From contig NIVC01003205.1 in NCBI GenBank assembly GCA_002269645.1, forward strand, positions 1-64,000: a DNA stretch of 64,000 nucleotides. Reading direction: 5' to 3'. Shown here in pieces: positions 7,836-18,366 of the stretch. The translations under genes were made by a program, and so were the position numbers. The notes below the pieces were generated by a model. That model saw only the letters and a list, made by a program, of their open reading frames with translations. It was not told where the DNA came from and ran no database searches. The DNA is from Macrostomum lignano. Lineage: Eukaryota. How positions within the stretch are numbered: position 1 is the first letter of the stretch; each line of letters begins with the position of its first letter.

Positions 7836-8227
7836 AGTGATTGCCTTATCCCCTTAAACCACTGTTAACCGTCTTCGATCGCAAGAATTTTCAATCCAAC
7901 GAATCCAATACATGCCACTGCATGAAAGTGAAAGGCTTGTGCGACTGTCTTACTGAAAAATTGGATGGCCGTACAAATAACTGATGGCGTTTTATGTATC
8001 TTTGTCTTAAAAATGTATAAACGCGCTATTAAAATTAAATACTTAAAACCAGATAGAAAGCCGTAAGCATGTGATATGACTATAAATTGTATATGAAGTA
8101 AATTAAATTAAACAACTTTAAAAATAAGACCAAATTCGTGTGATCACACCATTTGTACTTCCACTTTCATTCGTTTTTGCACATTAGTAGTGTGAGTTGA
8201 TTCCTCATTCGGTGGCAGTGTGAATGA

Positions 8228-8520
8228 GCCTTTGGGTACACGAGCTATAGCCCTTCAAAATAAGCAGAAATGCCCCAAATGGCTTTTGGGTACACGAGCT
8301 ATAGCCCTTCAAAATAAGCAGAAATGCCCCAAATGGCTTTTGGGTACACGAGCTATAGCCCTTCAAAATAAACAGAAATGCTCTAAATGGCTTTTGGGTA
8401 CACGAGCTATAGCCCTTCAAAATAAGCAGAAATGCTCTAAATTGCTTTTGGGTACACGAGCTATACCCCTTCAAAAATGCCCCAAATGGCTTTTGGGTAC
8501 AGGAGTTCTAGCCCTTTAAA
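8228..8520. repeat. Minisatellite, 54-bp unit, ~5 copies
   Basis: gggtacacgagctatagcccttcaaaataagcagaaatgccccaaatggctttt at 8234, 8288, 8342, 8396, and a deleted copy at 8450. Confidence 0.95.
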
Positions 8521-8880
8521 ATAGAGATAAATAAGCTTTGTACAACTACAACAACAAAAATAAGGTCTATTTCGCCTGTACACAGTGTTTGAGTGCGGTT
8601 TTCAACCGGTGATATCTAAATTTTTCGGTATTCAACTTGTAGGATATGTCGGGAACACAATAGACTTCTAAAAATAGCCCTACAACAATGCAGTTTTCAA
8701 AAAATACTGCATTGGATAGCATAACTACCAGTGCCATAGACGTCCGCATGCTCAAACTTTTGTGGGATAATTAAAAAAACTTCATCTTGTCAAGCTTGAT
8801 GAAGTACGTAATATTGTATGGATTAAAAATTATGGACCATTAAGTTCTATGTTTTAGCAAAAAAGCAAACCCCCCCCCCA

Positions 8881-9238: not shown

Positions 9239-12200
9239 AGAAATACCCCTTACGGCCACAGCCAGAGCCGGGCTTCCTGCACGGCTGCCAGAAGACTTTG
9301 CGACAGTCCTTTGAGGCCACGAGCCTTCGTCGGGATGCTCACAGTGTCACCCTCTGGCTGTGCGTCAGGAAGCACAATTACGAGAACTACTTGTGGCAGT
9401 TTGTGCGCCTTGGCCGGTTCCACGGGAGCGAAGCGTACTCAAACTTGTCGCTGTGGACTGTTCAGCTGCGAGTTCGAATGCACCGACGAGTTCCCTTTGG
9501 TTGTCTTCTGCGAGGTCTTTGCTGCCGCTTCGGGCTCGGCTCGACAAGTGAGGCTCTTAAACTGTGTTTGGACGGCTTCTACGGCATGCCTGGCTTTGGC
9601 GACATTTTTGGAAACCATAGTGACGGTAAGCTGTGAGCCATGGCATATTATTTAACTTACTTTAAATTATATTATACTGAAGTAGTATATTAAAGTTCAT
9701 TTTTTACTTCACTACTTGTCGCACAAATTGAGTCACATCACATATTTACACGTTAGTGAAGGGGAGGCAAAGACAAGACAAACCGAGTGTGGCGATGGCA
9801 AGGCAGCGAAAAGCCAGAGGATGCAACCCTCAGACGATCGTATTTATTTCATGACTTGTTAAAACGAATTAAACTGATTAAAAATTATAAATAGCGAGGA
9901 AAAAAAATTCAACCGCGAGCAACCCCGCGCAGCCACAAAGGTGGCGGCCTAAATAGGCACGCGCACGCACCAACGCACCCACCACCCCACCAGACAGCCA
10001 GCACCCAAACAGCCCCCCTTGCACTAACAGCGGTTAGCCCTCGCGGGCTCGCGCAAACCGATGCATTAGTGAAGGGGAGGCAAAGACAAGACAAACCGAG
10101 TGTGGCGATGGCGAGGCAGCGAAAAGCCAGAGGATGCAACCCCAAGGCCAAACAAACAAATGAATGAACGAAGGAGAGAATTTACGAAACGGCGGAAATA
10201 AGGCTGGGGATAAGAACGGAAATAAAACTTTGAACACAAGCAAAAGTTACTCAAAGGCAACTCTCGTTAAAAGCACCAGCAAAACGCGAACCAGCCCGCA
10301 CAGAATCAGCAGATGGAAGGTAGGCAGTCACAGCATCACTTCGCCAGTCACCGATGCACTTCACCTCCTGAACAGATAGTCCGAGACGGTAGGCCCAGGT
10401 GGCACCACCTCTGCGCAGGCTGTGCGCTGAGAAAGAACGAGCGTCCTGCTCAGCAGTTGCTAGGCAGCGCTTGAGGAACCTGTCGAATCTTGAGGCAGAC
10501 AGGACAACAGAGGATCCGCTCGCCAACTGGTAGGAGAACACAGGCTGCCTGCAGCCAAGCTTGCTGACACGGAGGTGACCCTCTAGCGCAGCCACTGGGC
10601 AAAGCGGATGTCCTTCTTTTAGCCTTGGAAGCAACACCCGGTGCAGCTTCGCGCCGAACTGATTCGTCTTGCCATAACTGACAGAGAGCACAACCCCCTT
10701 CGGGTGGCGTTGAAAGGCTGAGACGGAAATCGGTGAAGCGGACTGCTGACTGGGCAGGAGACTGGAGCGCCGAAACATCCCCCACCAAGCAATAAGCGTC
10801 ACAAGCCAGCAGACTCTGTCAAGCGAACTGCTCGAGTTAAGCCGGTTTTTCACAGACAGCAGCATCGCAGGCGAGATCGGCAGCTTCCGTCTTGGTCGCT
10901 GGCCCATCCTCCGTTTAGCGCCGCGAACGAGCAGTGAGACCAGGTGGTGTTTTGTTAGGTCCTCAGCACCACAGGCTTTGAACCAGCTGGACAGTGCACT
11001 GACATGGACACGCAGACTGTTGAACGATCTCAGGCGGCATTCGACCAGGTGAGCCAGGTAGTTGAGTAGCACCGACCGGTCGGATCGAGCCGGGTTGGTC
11101 CCGTTCTCGTTGCAGAAGCTGTGCCAGGACCGGACGGCCGATGAGATCGCCCTGCGTGACTGCGGTGCGTATGCTGCGGCGAGGAGGCTGGAGGCGGCGG
11201 CGCCGAGGGTCGGCGTTGCAGGGAGGCGGCCTGTGAAAATAAAAAACGGGAGGCAAAAACAGAAAACGCGTGATCCGAAAACTCCACAGGGCAAACTGGT
11301 ACAGACCCGTAAACACGGAAAATAAAATTAAGCAACTCATGACGCGAGTGCAGGCGGGACCCTGCATCAGCAAACAGCTGATAAGCACCAGGAACGTGAA
11401 AGACCTCAAATTCAACGTCAAAACGCAGACAGAGCAACGCCACAGACTGCAGCAACCACATCAGACGCGAGTCCTTGGAGACACCTCGCCTTAGAATCCA
11501 ACACGCCGTCTCATTGTCGCAGTACACAGCAAGCCGACAACCAGCCAAGGATTGGCCCCATCTCAAAACAGCCAGCAATATAACCACAGCCTCCTTGTAA
11601 TTGATGCAGTAATTCTGAAAAACACCATTTGCGTCGATCTGCCAGTCAATAAAGCACCAATCACGAATCCCATCACCGTCACGGAGCACCGCCGCGGCGC
11701 CTGAAGACGACGAGTCAGTCTCTATGGCAACACAAGCCCTCGGCGAAGTCCACAGGCCAACACCGATGCGATGCTGCAAAGCCAACCGCCACCAGGAGAG
11801 GTGGTGCACCACGGAGGGACTAACAAGAACCCTGTCATGAGGCCGATGCAGCTTGTTAACAATGTCGATAAGAGGTCGGAGGAAAACTCTCCCGTGCCGA
11901 ACAACTTGCGACGCCCAGTTTAACTTGCCGATCAACTTCTGCAAACACGACTTTGACAGCCTTTTCTTCGAAGAGCAGAGGGATAAAACATGCAATAAGT
12001 CTTGGACTTTTTCGGCAGGAAGAGACATCTGGCCTGCCACGCTATCAAATAAAATGCCCAGAAAGGTCATCCGCGTTGTCGGCGGAACACACTTGCTACG
12101 GTTAACGGTGAAGCCTAGCCGCTCGAGCAGATCGATGAGATGGTTGTAGAACTTCCAGCAGGACTCCAGATCTCCACAAAAGGCGAAGTCATCCATGTAG

Positions 12201-15200
12201 GCCTCCATAGCGTAGAAACCATGCTTCAACATCATAAAACGCACAGCTTGGCTCAGCTCGTAAAAGCAGAAGACGGAAGCCGAAGCACCAAACGGGAGCC
12301 GCGTGTCGTACAGGTACACTGGCTGGCCCTCGCCTTGGAGCTGAATCTTCATGCCTGTGACCCGGTGGTCATCAGGGTGCACACCACATGAACGATATGC
12401 TTGCGACAGATCCACTTTGCACATGTACGCGCCGCTGTACAGCTTCGAGGCAAAGTTGCTGGCCGAAGTAAAACGCAACTTCCGTTTCGACTCAAAGAAA
12501 TCATTCACAGAGGCGCCAGTTGGCAGGCTGCAGTCGTGAATAAGGCGGATGGAAGACGAATCCGCCTTAGGGATCGCACCAAGGGCACTAACGATGAGCG
12601 GCCGGTTGCCTGCCTGGCAGCGCCTGTAGCGGTCCTGCTTGAGCTCCTGGCGCACCTGGGCCTCAACAGCTTGCTGGTGAATGGTAGCTGATCTGTGATT
12701 TGCCATCTCAGTGTGGTTCTTACAATCCATCACTTTATTAGTAATTCGAAAGCCATTCTTCACACCATCGAGCACGAACCTGACACGGTCCTCCGGCATC
12801 TCGGTCCCAGCCAGCTCTTCCCGCCAAACCGCAAACACAAGGTCGCTCGACAACTCAGTTGAACTCGGGTCACATAGGGGGAGCTCCCCCGTGGGGGCAC
12901 AGGAGGGCGACCCGACGGCAGACATTGAGTCCTGTGCCCCCACCTCGCACGCTAGTTTTTTGAAAATTGGCCCGGGTCCCCATCAGCGTGGGCTCGGGCT
13001 TCAGAGTGCGGCTGTGAGCACCTGCGGCACTGATGGGCGAAGCGGCAGTGAGTTCTGTTGCAGCCGCTAAGACTGTTGAAGTCGAAACAGACAGGTGGCT
13101 GCGTTCGCTTTTTAGGCGCTGTTGCGTTTATCATTTTTGTTGGTGCCATCAAGTGTGTTGCCACCAGACCCAGGTCTGCGCTAACAGCGCTCCACCGCGT
13201 TCCATCATGCTGGAGAAGCCGACATTCGTCATCATATCTCATGACTTTAGTGCGATCGAAGCCTAAATCTAGCAGGTCACCAATTCTAGCGTTATGTCGG
13301 AGATGATCGATCAACTCGGATGAATCGATTCTGCCATCAACAATGCGCAGCAGTTTGCCATCACGCAGCATTTGCACCAGTAAGTTACAGCTACCGGAGA
13401 TGAAATCGCCAAACGACAGTGACTCGGGACTGACGTGTCTCAACCTCTCTGGCTTTGCCGCTCCCACAACAGACTGGCTTCCTTGTCTCCGCTTACGCTC
13501 ACTGATAAAATCAACGACTCTGTACACCGCCGGCGCCTGAGCATGCGAAGTTGCAGCCCCAGCCTGCCCGAGTATACACTCGCCAACCAAATCATGCCAC
13601 TCACCGGGAGTCTGATCACGTTCTCTCGCAGCCGCCGTGCCACTGTGACGCGCTTCAGCGAGCTCGGCTTCGAGCTGAGCCTCTCTTTTTTTCAGGTCCA
13701 GCAACCGAATGCGCAGTTCAGTCTCTCGCAGCTGATCCTCGAGACCGCCTCCCGTCGCCGCCCGACCCTCGGCCGAGGCGCCCACCGCCGGTAGCATCTC
13801 GTCCTCAGGTGGAGCCAGACTTAGCTCGGGTGCGCCCGCATTCGTCGGTGATGTCTTGTCATCTTGAGCACGACGAGATGAGCCTCTGTCCTGCTCCAAC
13901 GCCTGCCGCTCAAGCTCCTTGGCAATGCTGAGTTTTAGACGACTTGTTAGCTCTTGCTTATTGCCATTAGTAGGCAGGCCGCGCTCACTAAGGGCTTCTC
14001 GTAGCGCTTTGTTAGTTGCGGGCAGTACAAGGCTATCTGCCATGATTCAGCAAAAAAATTCAACCGCGAGCAACCCCGCGCAGCCACAAAGGTGGCGGCC
14101 TAAATAGGCACGCGCACGCACCAACGCACCCACCACCCCACCAGACAGCCAGCACCCAAACAGCCCCCCCTTGCACTAACAGCGGTTAGCCCTCGCGGGC
14201 TCGCGCAAACCGATGCATAACAATGAAGATTGCGGTGCGAAAACAAAAAAATAGAAGATATTTAAGATTGACAAGCAAAAAATAGCTAGGAAATTTTAAC
14301 ATACTACTTGGGACTCTGAGCACTTCAACGTTGAGAACTCGAGTGATGCGGAGCTGTGCTCAAATTCGTGTGCACCACGCCAGAAGAGGCACCCTCTGCG
14401 TTCAACCAGGCCCAAGGCGGAGACATTCTACTATTGTCTGTCTCGAAAACCATAGACACAATCTACTATTGTCTACCTCCAAAATCATAGACACAATTAA
14501 TCTACTATTGCCTCTCGAAAACCATAGACACAATCTACCATTGTCTGCCTCCAAAAACATAGACACAATCTACTATTGTCTCTCGAAAACCATAGACACA
14601 ATCTACCATTGTCTGCCTCCAAAACCACAGACACAATCTACCATTGTCTGCCTCCAAAACCACAGACACAATCTACCCTTGTCTGCCTCCAAAAACATAG
14701 ACACAATCTACTATTGTCTCTCGAAAACCATAGACACAATCTACAATTGTCTGACTCCAAAACCATAGACACAATCTACCATGCATTGATGCCTCCAAAA
14801 CCACAGACACAATTGATCATTGTCTGCCTCCAAAACCATAGACACAATCTACCATTGTCTACCTCCAAAACCATAGACACAATCTACCATTGTCTGCCTC
14901 CAAAACCATAGACACAATCTACCCTTGTCTGCCTCCAAAACCATAGACACAATCTACCCTTGTCTACCTCCAAAACCATAGACACAATCTACCCTTGTCT
15001 GCCTCCAAAACCATAGACACAATCTACCCGTGTCTGCTTCAAAAAACACAGACACAATTTACCATTTACCATACAACCTCCAGAACTATGGACCCAATCT
15101 ACCCATTTTTTAGACTGGTGTCCCCGAATCGAGAGTTAAAAAAGTGGATGACAGACAAACTTGTGCTAAACAGTCCTGTTTTTCACATTTAGATGCAGTT

Positions 15201-15870: not shown

Positions 15871-18366
15871 GTTAGACCAAAGCCTGGCTGAGGATGGCAT
15901 CGAGACAGAAGTGTTCGCAAAAGATGGCTGGGGCCTTCATCCCGGTGCACTAAATAAGCTACATCAAGCGCATTCAGACATTGGAGACCTCGTGCGCGTG
16001 TCCTATCCCAGCTCCAAGCGTACAGAGAAACTTGGCTTAGTGCTCACACCGGAGCTGATGACTTGGATGTTGGACGCTGCCAAAGATCACCGCACTCCAC
16101 TCATCCATCCACTGCTCCCGAAAATACGAGCAAAGGTGTTCAGGTGCGACACAGCCTCAGACGTTGATGCCGCCGATGGACTCGGAGCTGGCATCGGAGC
16201 TGGTAGAGGAGCTCTTGAGGAGCTGCGAAATTTCGCCAGCAAAGTTGACAGCATGCTGCGGGTCCGCTGCGCCGGCTCAGGAAGCTTCTTGGATATCTGG
16301 TCGCCAGAGAGTGCAGCCTATTTTGTCGTGGATACTTTCTTTGGTTCCTCGATCTGCAGCATCTATGGAATCGAGCGGGACCATCGCTTCCACTCGTACG
16401 CTGTGGACGCAGCGTTGCATGAGCTTGAAAAAGGTTTTGTGACATTCTTCAGCGGCAATTCCGGTAGTCAAGCAAAATTGCGTAAAGCCGACCTGGACAA
16501 AGCCTGGGAGAATCTCTATCGCCTGCACCCGACAGCCCAGGAGCTGGCTGCCGCTGAGCCATGTCATCATTTCAAGGATTTACTCAACAGAGCCCTAAAG
16601 AGTGCGTGCAACTGCTTGTTGACTGTTTGATTTACCATATTGTCCTAAGCAAAGCGCTATGAGCATAGACACTGGCACAGGGAACAGAACAGCAGTGCCC
16701 GTCCTAAGCAAAACGCTATGAGCATAGACACTGGCACAGGGAACAGAACAGCAGTGCCTGTCCTAACCAAAACGCTATGAGCATAGAAACTGGCACAGGG
16801 AACAGAACAGCAGTGCCCGTCCTAAGCAAAACGCTATGAGCATAGACACTGGCACAGGGGAACAGAACAGCAGTGCCTGTCCTAACCGGACCAAAACACT
16901 ATGAGCATAGACACTGGCACAGGGAACAGAATGGCAGCGCCCACGCCTCTTGTGTTCCACTTTAAAGTTGATAACCAAAATGCTCACTTTTAGTGGAAAC
17001 CGGGTCTGACCAATACAAGTCGCACCTCCAATCTAAACTAGCAGCAATAGCTTTATTTGTTATCTCAGAAAATTAACTCATGTATTTTCCAGATCCAAAT
17101 AAGTCTTGGAGAGCCTTTGTCGGCTGCAGCATCAACTGTCTCTATAGCGACTACAGTGCTAAGAAAGCAGCTTTCTGGGCAATTCACTATCTCATATCTC
17201 ACACAGCCGTGCAGGAGAGCCTGTTAGCCGAGATCGATTCCATGGCGACCGCAGCAAGACCGCACGAATTTCGGCGATTGACGCTCAAGGAGCTTGATGA
17301 GATGCCATTTCTTGGTGGGTGGCACTTGCTTTGATTCTATTGAATATTTCGCGAAGCTCAGAGTCAACTTTTCATTTCAGAGGCCTTCGTAAAAGAAGTT
17401 TACCGGCTCACGTCGGGGCAGTTCGTTAGCTTCAGAGCTGGAACTGACTTGTTGTTGCAGACGCAGAAGAACTCTGAAGGCATCTGCTTGCACAGCGGTG
17501 AAGAGATCGGGGTGCTGCTTCGTTCATTGAACATGGACCCCAGTCTGTTCAAAAATCCAGAGGTGAGTTTTTGGCTGTTAGTACTGAAAGTGCAGGTGAA
17601 CATAAATCTATGTTGTTAGTTATTCTGGGTCTAAATTACTCAGTACTAGCTTAAGATTAGTGATTACTTTTGACATTCGCTTCGATATAGTTATAAGTAA
17701 AAAAGCTAGCGAACTATTTAGCAGCATTCAGATCTTAAAAATCTAAAGTCATCTCATTCTTTTGGAATAGAAGATCATAATCCGGTGCGGTTTGCGAAGC
17801 TTAAAATACGGCCTGCTAAGTTACTTATTCAGGGGAGGAGGGTTGGTGCCGTACGTAAGGGTGGTGGTCTACTTGTAGAGTCTCGAAGTCAAAAGCAGAA
17901 CTTTTGAGATGTCGTTCAGACCTTACAATGCACACTCCGATCTCCTTGGCGGCAGCAATGACGCGACACCTTGAATCCTACTTGAAGTATCGTAAAACGA
18001 ATTCAATCCTAACTAGGATGATTTCTAGTGTGCTTCAACAAAGTCTTTTATTGCCGTACAGAAATGCGAATTCTCGTCCATTGTTCCACACAGGCGTTCC
18101 AGCCGCAGCGCTTTCTGTTTGAGACCCAGCATGCGGAGCTCCTGGCCCTGCCGTTCGGCTGTCTGTGGCCTCGCCGGCGCCTCGGGCTGTTGAAGCTTAA
18201 GCTGTTCTTGGTGCTGCTGCTGAGCCGGTGCCGCATTCGGGCTGATGAAGGCACAGGCGCTCAGGTTGACGCCAGCGCCTTCTGCGTTGATATTCTGCCC
18301 TGGACGGAGGACGTTGTCTTTCAGTTCCAGGCCAGGGAGCAGATGAGAGCGACATTTACGCTTTAG
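15871..18366 (+). CDS. Cytochrome P450-fold domain, CYP7/CYP8-like, with degenerate heme motif; 4 exons, ~468 aa
   Basis: Exons 15871-16601, 17093-17314, 17381-17562, 18094-18366; all GT-AG junctions are phase-compatible. I/J-helix AAFWAIHYLISHTAVQESLLAEID (cf. CYP8A1 AAFWLLLFLLKNPEA), ExxR KEVYR, DPSLFKNPE, PQRF, PFG. No in-frame ATG or TM anchor at the start, so an upstream exon is required. Confidence 0.88.
16642..16935. repeat. Minisatellite, 59-bp unit, ~5 copies, in a P450 intron
   Basis: gtcctaagcaaaacgctatgagcatagacactggcacagggaacagaacagcagtgccc at 16642, 16701, 16760, 16819, 16879; alternating variants. Confidence 0.95.

Follow-up and report, generated by a model that had tools for sequence, protein, structure and literature searches.

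A Probable Programmed −1 Ribosomal Frameshift Signal at the gag/pol Junction of a Ngaro-Type Retrotransposon in Macrostomum lignano

Introduction

How does a retrotransposon whose enzymes lie out of frame with its structural protein produce those enzymes, and in what proportion? The question is raised by an element on the minus strand of contig NIVC01003205.1 of the flatworm Macrostomum lignano (GenBank assembly GCA_002269645.1), of which we analyzed positions 1 to 64,000 (herein referred to as the window; unless a relative is named, coordinates are those of the window). The element is a tyrosine-recombinase (YR) retrotransposon of Ngaro type, present in the window as a single copy, in which the pol frame, encoding reverse transcriptase (RT) and RNase H (RH), lies −1 relative to gag. 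A reading made earlier from the letters and open reading frames (ORFs) of this DNA (herein the sequence-only reading) had proposed a virus-like −1 frameshift signal at the gag/pol junction, stimulated by a three-stem pseudoknot and new to DIRS/Ngaro elements. We conclude that the junction of this intact Ngaro-type element probably carries a programmed −1 ribosomal frameshift signal, one that would operate on its unspliced RNA. The heptamer, the frames, the stability of a downstream hairpin and the conservation of the site, or its replacement, in relatives were all read or computed from the DNA and are set out below.

Results and Discussion

A Slippery Heptamer Abuts the gag Stop Codon

The features at the junction are the following.

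12952-14043, minus strand: gag ORF, 363 codons plus the TAG stop
11030-12982, minus strand: pol frame encoding RT and RNase H; −1 with respect to gag and open from 12982
12955-12961, minus strand: slippery heptamer A_AAA_AAC, in X_XXY_YYZ phase in the gag frame and abutting the gag stop
12952-12954, minus strand: gag stop codon, TAG
12944-12954, minus strand: spacer between heptamer and hairpin S1, 11 nucleotides (nt) including the stop codon
12930-12943, minus strand: 5′ arm of S1, 14 of 14 Watson-Crick pairs with 12891-12904
12905-12929, minus strand: loop of S1, 25 nt, holding the candidate 5′ arm of stem S2 (12907-12915)
12891-12904, minus strand: 3′ arm of S1, paired with 12930-12943

As the sequence-only reading had described, gag ends on the minus strand as ...CAA TTT TCA AAA AAC TAG, with A_AAA_AAC in frame at 12961-12955, and the −1 frame across the heptamer reads KKLACEVGAQD... 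and continues into RT/RNase H. This frame opens at 12982, immediately past a TGA at 12985-12983, and overlaps gag by 28 nt. Among the 363 codons of gag the heptamer is the sole in-frame X_XXY_YYZ, and first-principles arithmetic (about 1/512 per codon) puts the chance of finding one inside the nine-codon overlap at ~0.02; its placement is more than chance. A_AAA_AAC, and likewise G_GGA_AAC, which is present in more distant relatives of the element, is among the shiftiest heptamers for mammalian ribosomes (PMC5009743). The junction has the sequence features of a canonical −1 signal (heptamer phase, −1 ORF, overlap, and conservation), spacer length being the exception.

An Exceptional Hairpin Follows the Heptamer

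Downstream of the spacer lies S1, whose 14 perfect base pairs (12943-12930 with 12904-12891) had been correctly identified from the sequence. Taken alone it has a predicted stability of −29.4 kcal/mol, and among perfect hairpins with loops no longer than 40 nt it is the only one in the 64-kb window to reach 14 bp. The hairpin-only fold reaches −31.1 kcal/mol, compared with −19.2 ± 2.95 kcal/mol in dinucleotide shuffles (z=−4.03), only 1 of 200 of which was as stable. When the whole element was scanned with sliding folds of 60, 75, and 100 nt, the position starting at 12943 ranked first of ~1460, both in raw energy and after correction for G+C content. S1 is clearly exceptional, beyond what chance would produce. 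Folds of the whole region (116-120 nt) are unimpressive, with z-scores of only −1.37 for the window element and −0.94 for its L001 relative (see below), because flanking sequence weakens the signal; more was learned from hairpin-only folds and from the sliding scan.

We hypothesize that most ribosomes would terminate at the gag TAG and release Gag, whereas a minority, paused by S1 (12943-12891), would slip back by one base on A_AAA_AAC (12961-12955) and continue in the −1 frame through RT/RNase H to give a Gag-Pol fusion, the ratio of Gag-Pol to Gag being thereby held at a fixed low value. Slippage itself, and its efficiency, we infer from the sequence features described here.

Related Lineages Shift Frame or Read through a Stop

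DNA of relatives was retrieved for nine lineages, which fall by their pol proteins into two clades. Their gag/pol junctions are arranged as follows.

L001, L004, L005, and L006 (four sequencing runs; herein the L001 family): gag ends CCA AAA AAC TGA, with A_AAA_AAC against the stop and pol −1
L002: gag and pol in frame with one stop between, UGA CUA G, 1533-1540
L003: gag and pol in frame with one stop between, UGA CUC G, 1107-1113
L013, L014, and L015 (second clade): gag and pol in frame with one stop between, UAG CUA G, L013 2666-2672
L016 and L017 (second clade): pol −1, overlapping gag by 25-31 nt, with G_GGA_AAC in the overlap
L012 (775-1031) and L018 (1272-1522): pol +1, overlapping gag by ~250 nt; 66% identical to each other

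The nearest relative of the window element is the L001 family (53% identity in pol, 43% in gag), which places the same heptamer against a different stop codon and follows it, after 7 nt, with a bipartite stem of 9+9 bp bearing a 9-nt bulge and a 21-nt loop. This stem is as unusual as S1 by the same measure (−33.7 kcal/mol, z=−3.91, none of 200 shuffles as stable). Directly 5′ of A_AAA_AAC the L001 family also carries a second heptamer, C_CCA_AAA.

In L002 and L013-L015 a stop-CUAG context, and in L003 UGA CUC G, occupies the place where the window element has its frameshift site, and UGA-CUAG is a context for stop-codon readthrough in mammalian genes (PMC4132726). Downstream structure was scanned for L002 and L003, the two remaining members of the window clade, and is unremarkable there, with ranks of about 500-1100 of 1000-1260 windows in the sliding scan; the region downstream of the L013 stop gives z=−0.81 in a single fold. 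A single stop codon in a stop-CUAG-type context likewise separates gag from an in-frame pol in two further sequences, L007 (478) and L009 (317), and one sequencing run, SRR31628392, yields both L001 (frameshift type) and L003 (readthrough type), which share 53% pol identity. In lineages of the frameshift type, the site and the first conserved motif of pol are set apart by ~25 additional codons of low conservation, and it is in this stretch that the hairpins form.

In a neighbor-joining tree of pol proteins, lineages cluster by recoding mode within each of the two clades, and each clade holds both frameshift and readthrough types. Because the tree groups lineages by mode, the modes appear to be old and maintained; and since lineages with an in-frame stop stand as sisters to lineages with a −1 pol, the family as a whole would make Gag-Pol by translational recoding. 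The proposal of a −1 frameshift signal at the gag/pol junction of a YR element is therefore supported by the L001 family, by L016 and L017, and by the Ngaro features of the element itself.

Several observations nonetheless weigh against this interpretation. The comparison includes a single copy of the window element's own family: an exact look-up of its gag found no copy, protein searches run with pol, with gag, and with a profile of four sequences returned nothing closer than 50% identity except a host gene model, P0067, and a metagenome scan gave five distant loci only. The four copies of the L001 family are identical over 201 nt around the site and hence offer no covariation. In canonical −1 signals the heptamer usually lies 5-9 nt from the structure; the 11-nt spacer of the window element (12954-12944), already noted as slightly long in the sequence-only reading, exceeds this range, and that of the L001 family (7 nt) does not. 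Finally, clearly strong downstream structure is found in only two independent lineages, the window element and the L001 family: nested folding and a simple pseudoknot scan revealed no strong structure downstream of the L016 heptamer, and L017 has one weak and sterically doubtful pseudoknot candidate.

The Element Is Intact and of Ngaro Type

The junction lies within an element with the following overall organization (domains from Pfam).

9753-14218, minus strand: whole Ngaro-type YR retrotransposon, ~4.47 kb, bounded by split direct repeats
14052-14218, minus strand: split direct repeat A1, the 5′ end of the element, 99.4% identical to A2 with one 1-nt indel
9753-10142, minus strand: 3′ repeat block, consisting of B1 (10142-10066), A2 (10066-9901), a 71-nt gap, and B2 (9829-9753)
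10251-11327, minus strand: tyrosine-recombinase frame, −1 relative to pol and overlapping it by 295 nt

The N-terminus of Gag is a SAP domain (E=3.6e-7) and its C-terminus a Cys/His-rich motif. Pol exceeds the gathering scores of both RVT_1 (E=2.6e-9) and RT_RNaseH (E=4.3e-6), and has no Pfam match to a methyltransferase domain at E<=0.01. The recombinase falls just under the gathering score of Phage_integrase (E=1.4e-4; 22.1 bits against 27.1); its translation shows an HxxR motif and a C-terminal Tyr, and the third ORFs of the relatives match the same family. Its gene order (gag-RT/RH-YR), the absence of a methyltransferase, and its split direct repeats, in place of inverted repeats with an internal complementary region, assign the element to the Ngaro type of the DIRS order.

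Pol is −1 relative to gag and the recombinase −1 relative to pol; each of the three ORFs is open, no gene is broken, and the repeats are 98.7-99.4% identical, B1 (10142-10066) and B2 (9829-9753) differing by one substitution. The element thus looks young and intact, and the gag/pol frame change is therefore not a product of decay. The textbook Ngaro layout has B2 directly after A2; here a 71-nt segment that matches nothing else within the element (9830-9900) separates the two. Tandem arrays flank the element at 14423-15066 (35 nt x 18.4), 16642-16942 (59 nt x 5.0), and 8223-8523 (54 nt x 5.7).

Is the Stimulator a Hairpin or a Three-Stem Pseudoknot?

The sequence-only reading had gone further and joined S1 to two more helices in a coronavirus-like H-type pseudoknot, in which the S1 loop pairs downstream as S2 and a third stem, S3, sits inside loop 3.

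12865-12873, minus strand: candidate 3′ arm of S2, putative partner of 12907-12915 in the S1 loop, duplex −15.3 kcal/mol
12877-12890, minus strand: S3 palindrome, 14 nt, five G-C pairs and a 4-nt loop, adjoining S1

All three helices can be drawn as first described. S2 comprises nine pairs (12915-12907 with 12873-12865), seven of them contiguous Watson-Crick pairs followed by one G-U and one C-G. S3 (−10.5 kcal/mol) appears in both the minimum free energy (MFE) and centroid folds and is plausible as a local hairpin in these models; the window holds 16 perfect palindromes of 14 nt, or ~0.025 per 100 nt. Energetically, S1+S3 (−39.9 kcal/mol) plus S2 (−15.3 kcal/mol) may be set against a nested MFE of −44.2 kcal/mol, so that after an estimated penalty of 7-10 kcal/mol the pseudoknot would roughly match the nested fold or be slightly favored over it. 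A simple H-type scan likewise selects S1+S2 as the best combination, and 1 of 478 element positions scores as well, on a score that is dominated by S1. A 7-bp match between loop and downstream sequence is also found in L005 (P 0.04-0.07).

With S1 given, however, S2 is weak. We compared pairing between the loop and the next 60 nt with that in shuffles and with the same geometry slid along the element. The 7-bp Watson-Crick run gave P values of 0.045 (shuffles) and 0.066 (slid geometry), the 9-bp run with G-U allowed 0.13 and 0.17, and the best loop-downstream duplex energy 0.26 and 0.15; depending on the measure, S2 is above chance only at the borderline. The match is also not unique, because S1-loop positions 12914-12903 are 83% complementary over 12 nt to an upstream segment containing GACCCG (12984-12973). 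By geometric estimate, a loop 3 consisting of a 14-nt hairpin plus 3 nt is sterically marginal for bridging a 14-bp S1. The L001 family has a different layout: its match sits 7 nt past an 18-bp composite stem and it has no equivalent of S3, so the three-stem design is not a conserved feature. The L001 family keeps the heptamer and a strong hairpin; its identical copies carry no covariation signal. A search of Rfam 15 in E-value mode returned no frameshift-element match and three chance-level matches to unrelated families.

A hairpin of comparable composition can replace a pseudoknot as stimulator (PMC3203594), and for this reason nothing in the data requires S2. S1 may act alone or together with S2 and S3; the three-stem pseudoknot is not established, and with S2 statistically weak, the layout of the relative different, and loop 3 tight, we consider it doubtful that the stimulator takes that form.

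Other Explanations for the Frame Change

The frame change could in principle be bridged, or have arisen, by means other than ribosomal frameshifting. RNA polymerase might add one A within the A6 run and thereby place gag and pol in one frame; the run stands exactly at the junction in both the window element and the L001 family, and a single added A would give the same downstream reading. Yet the A-run is in exact X_XXY_YYZ phase, the G_GGA_AAC of L016 and L017 contains three A's only, which fits a ribosome and not a polymerase, and very stable hairpins just downstream are a hallmark of ribosomal frameshifting, all of which makes transcriptional slippage very unlikely. We regard as exceedingly improbable that the frame change is an accident of decay or assembly beside which heptamer and hairpin are coincidental. 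A homopolymer run is a typical site of indel error and one copy of the exact family was seen, but the same arrangement recurs in four independent read sets of a relative only 53% identical, sister lineages share their recoding mode, and the open ORFs and near-identical terminal repeats described above speak against decay. Termination at the gag stop with reinitiation on pol finds an apparent footing in the L001 family, where the gag UGA overlaps a pol-frame AUG as UGAUG (L001 1057-1061; also L004, L005, and L006); in the window element, however, the first pol-frame AUG lies 11 codons downstream, inside the S1 loop, and L016 and L017 have no such AUG, so that we assign this mechanism a probability close to negligible.

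Splicing of gag to pol is the route implied by host gene model P0067 (UniRef A0A1I8G0Z6, Macrostomum lignano), which is identical to the window gag and recombinase and jumps from ...HQCR to SSTELSS..., removing the region of the site as an "intron". A GT does follow the conserved CRRC codons in all relatives; however, the donor of P0067 scores <7/9 in the window, the acceptor of its first intron is GAG without a pyrimidine tract, and the in-frame relatives have no matching acceptor. Splicing of this kind would also leave the conserved heptamers, the stop-CUAG contexts, and the hairpins unexplained, and the convincing splice pair of the element is elsewhere (13604 and 11231; see below). Because the same model deletes most of RT, its intron looks like an annotation artifact that bridges the frames, and we hold gag-pol splicing to be extremely unlikely. 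Over 14043-10251, P0067 joins gag, a small part of pol, and the recombinase into a single "SAP domain-containing protein" across two predicted introns, and of their acceptors only the second looks real. Our preferred explanation of the gag/pol frame change remains a programmed −1 ribosomal frameshift.

A Candidate Intron Could Supply the Recombinase

The recombinase poses a frame problem of its own, since its frame has no ATG before 10907. Here a candidate intron is found in the window element and in its relatives.

11231-13604, minus strand: candidate intron, GTGAGT...polypyrimidine-CAG, joining gag codons 1-146 in frame to the recombinase
L005, 620-2981: corresponding candidate intron
L002, 820-3188: corresponding candidate intron
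L003, donor 460 and acceptor exon base 2763: corresponding candidate intron

All four lineages of the window clade have an acceptor-like site (12-13 of 14 pyrimidines, N, CAG|G) at the homologous position where pol and recombinase overlap, just ahead of the onset of recombinase homology, and a donor-like GTGAG[T/C] at a homologous position in gag, whose stop lies 214-237 codons further on; the protein around the candidate donor is not conserved. Every donor and acceptor is in phase 1. When the exons are joined, which we did for the window element, L005, and L002, the result is an open frame of 472 codons in the window (14043-13605 + 11230-10251), 448 codons in L005, and at least 364 in L002. 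A spliced RNA fusing the SAP domain of gag to the recombinase is thus probably the route by which the recombinase is expressed, as judged from these sequence signals, and would explain a recombinase frame that has neither an early ATG nor a conserved heptamer.

A second frameshift was considered for the pol/YR overlap. U_UUU_UUA at 11246-11240 (minus strand) is the sole in-frame heptamer in pol, but it is not conserved in relatives and belongs to the candidate acceptor's pyrimidine tract; the splice model was preferred. The gag/pol frameshift site itself lies inside the candidate intron, an arrangement like that of retroviruses, in which gag-pol recoding uses unspliced RNA.

The most far-reaching form of this proposal is a three-way expression programme of retroviral kind common to the clade, in which Gag would be made by termination, Gag-RT/RH by recoding, and a SAP-recombinase from spliced RNA. 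At one and the same codon position, −1 frameshifting (with A_AAA_AAC or G_GGA_AAC and a hairpin) would have given way to stop-CUAG readthrough, or the reverse, and the stimulator of the window element would be a genuine three-stem pseudoknot. We consider it quite unlikely that all parts of this scheme hold together.

Comparison with Known Recoding Signals

The proposed signal most closely resembles retroviral gag-pol sites: in both, the same heptamers lie in the same phase where gag ends, the overlap with a −1 pol is short, a stable GC-rich structure follows closely downstream, and the Gag:Gag-Pol ratio is presumably fixed. It differs in that the element is of tyrosine-recombinase type, without protease or DDE integrase, and in its 11-nt spacer, an unusually long S1 of 14 perfect pairs, and a stop codon that abuts the heptamer. 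Ty3/gypsy and other long terminal repeat (LTR) retrotransposons reportedly use −1 frameshifting or readthrough; like them, the window element has a Ty3/gypsy-related RT/RNase H and related lineages that alternate between −1 frameshifting and stop readthrough, although it belongs to another order (DIRS/Ngaro).

The likeness to the coronavirus pseudoknot exists in proposal only, with S2 running from loop to downstream sequence and S3 in a long connecting loop; the window S1 is longer, the heptamer is another one, S2 is not significant, and the whole is a thermodynamic possibility only. Unlike the stop-CUAG readthrough lineages, the window element has its pol out of frame and does not use that context, and its signal has no sequence or Rfam similarity to described frameshift elements.

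The sequence-only reading knew of no such structure in DIRS/Ngaro elements, and novelty is indeed plausible: the literature searched describes no recoding signal for them, and reviews on YR elements mention their ORFs only as "overlapping" or "frameshifted". That search did not extend to the primary Ngaro descriptions, however, and an earlier mention at the level of ORFs is possible.

Significance

The mechanism proposed here is a textbook one, and what is gained is scope and not principle: heptamers canonical for vertebrate viruses appear to be in use in a flatworm element as well. A rule for annotating such elements also follows, as P0067 illustrates by bridging the site with an implausible intron and losing most of RT. 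How tyrosine-recombinase retrotransposons set the ratio of Gag to enzyme has hardly been described before, and a concrete conserved signal, together with sister lineages of the readthrough type, makes that question testable with existing flatworm data.

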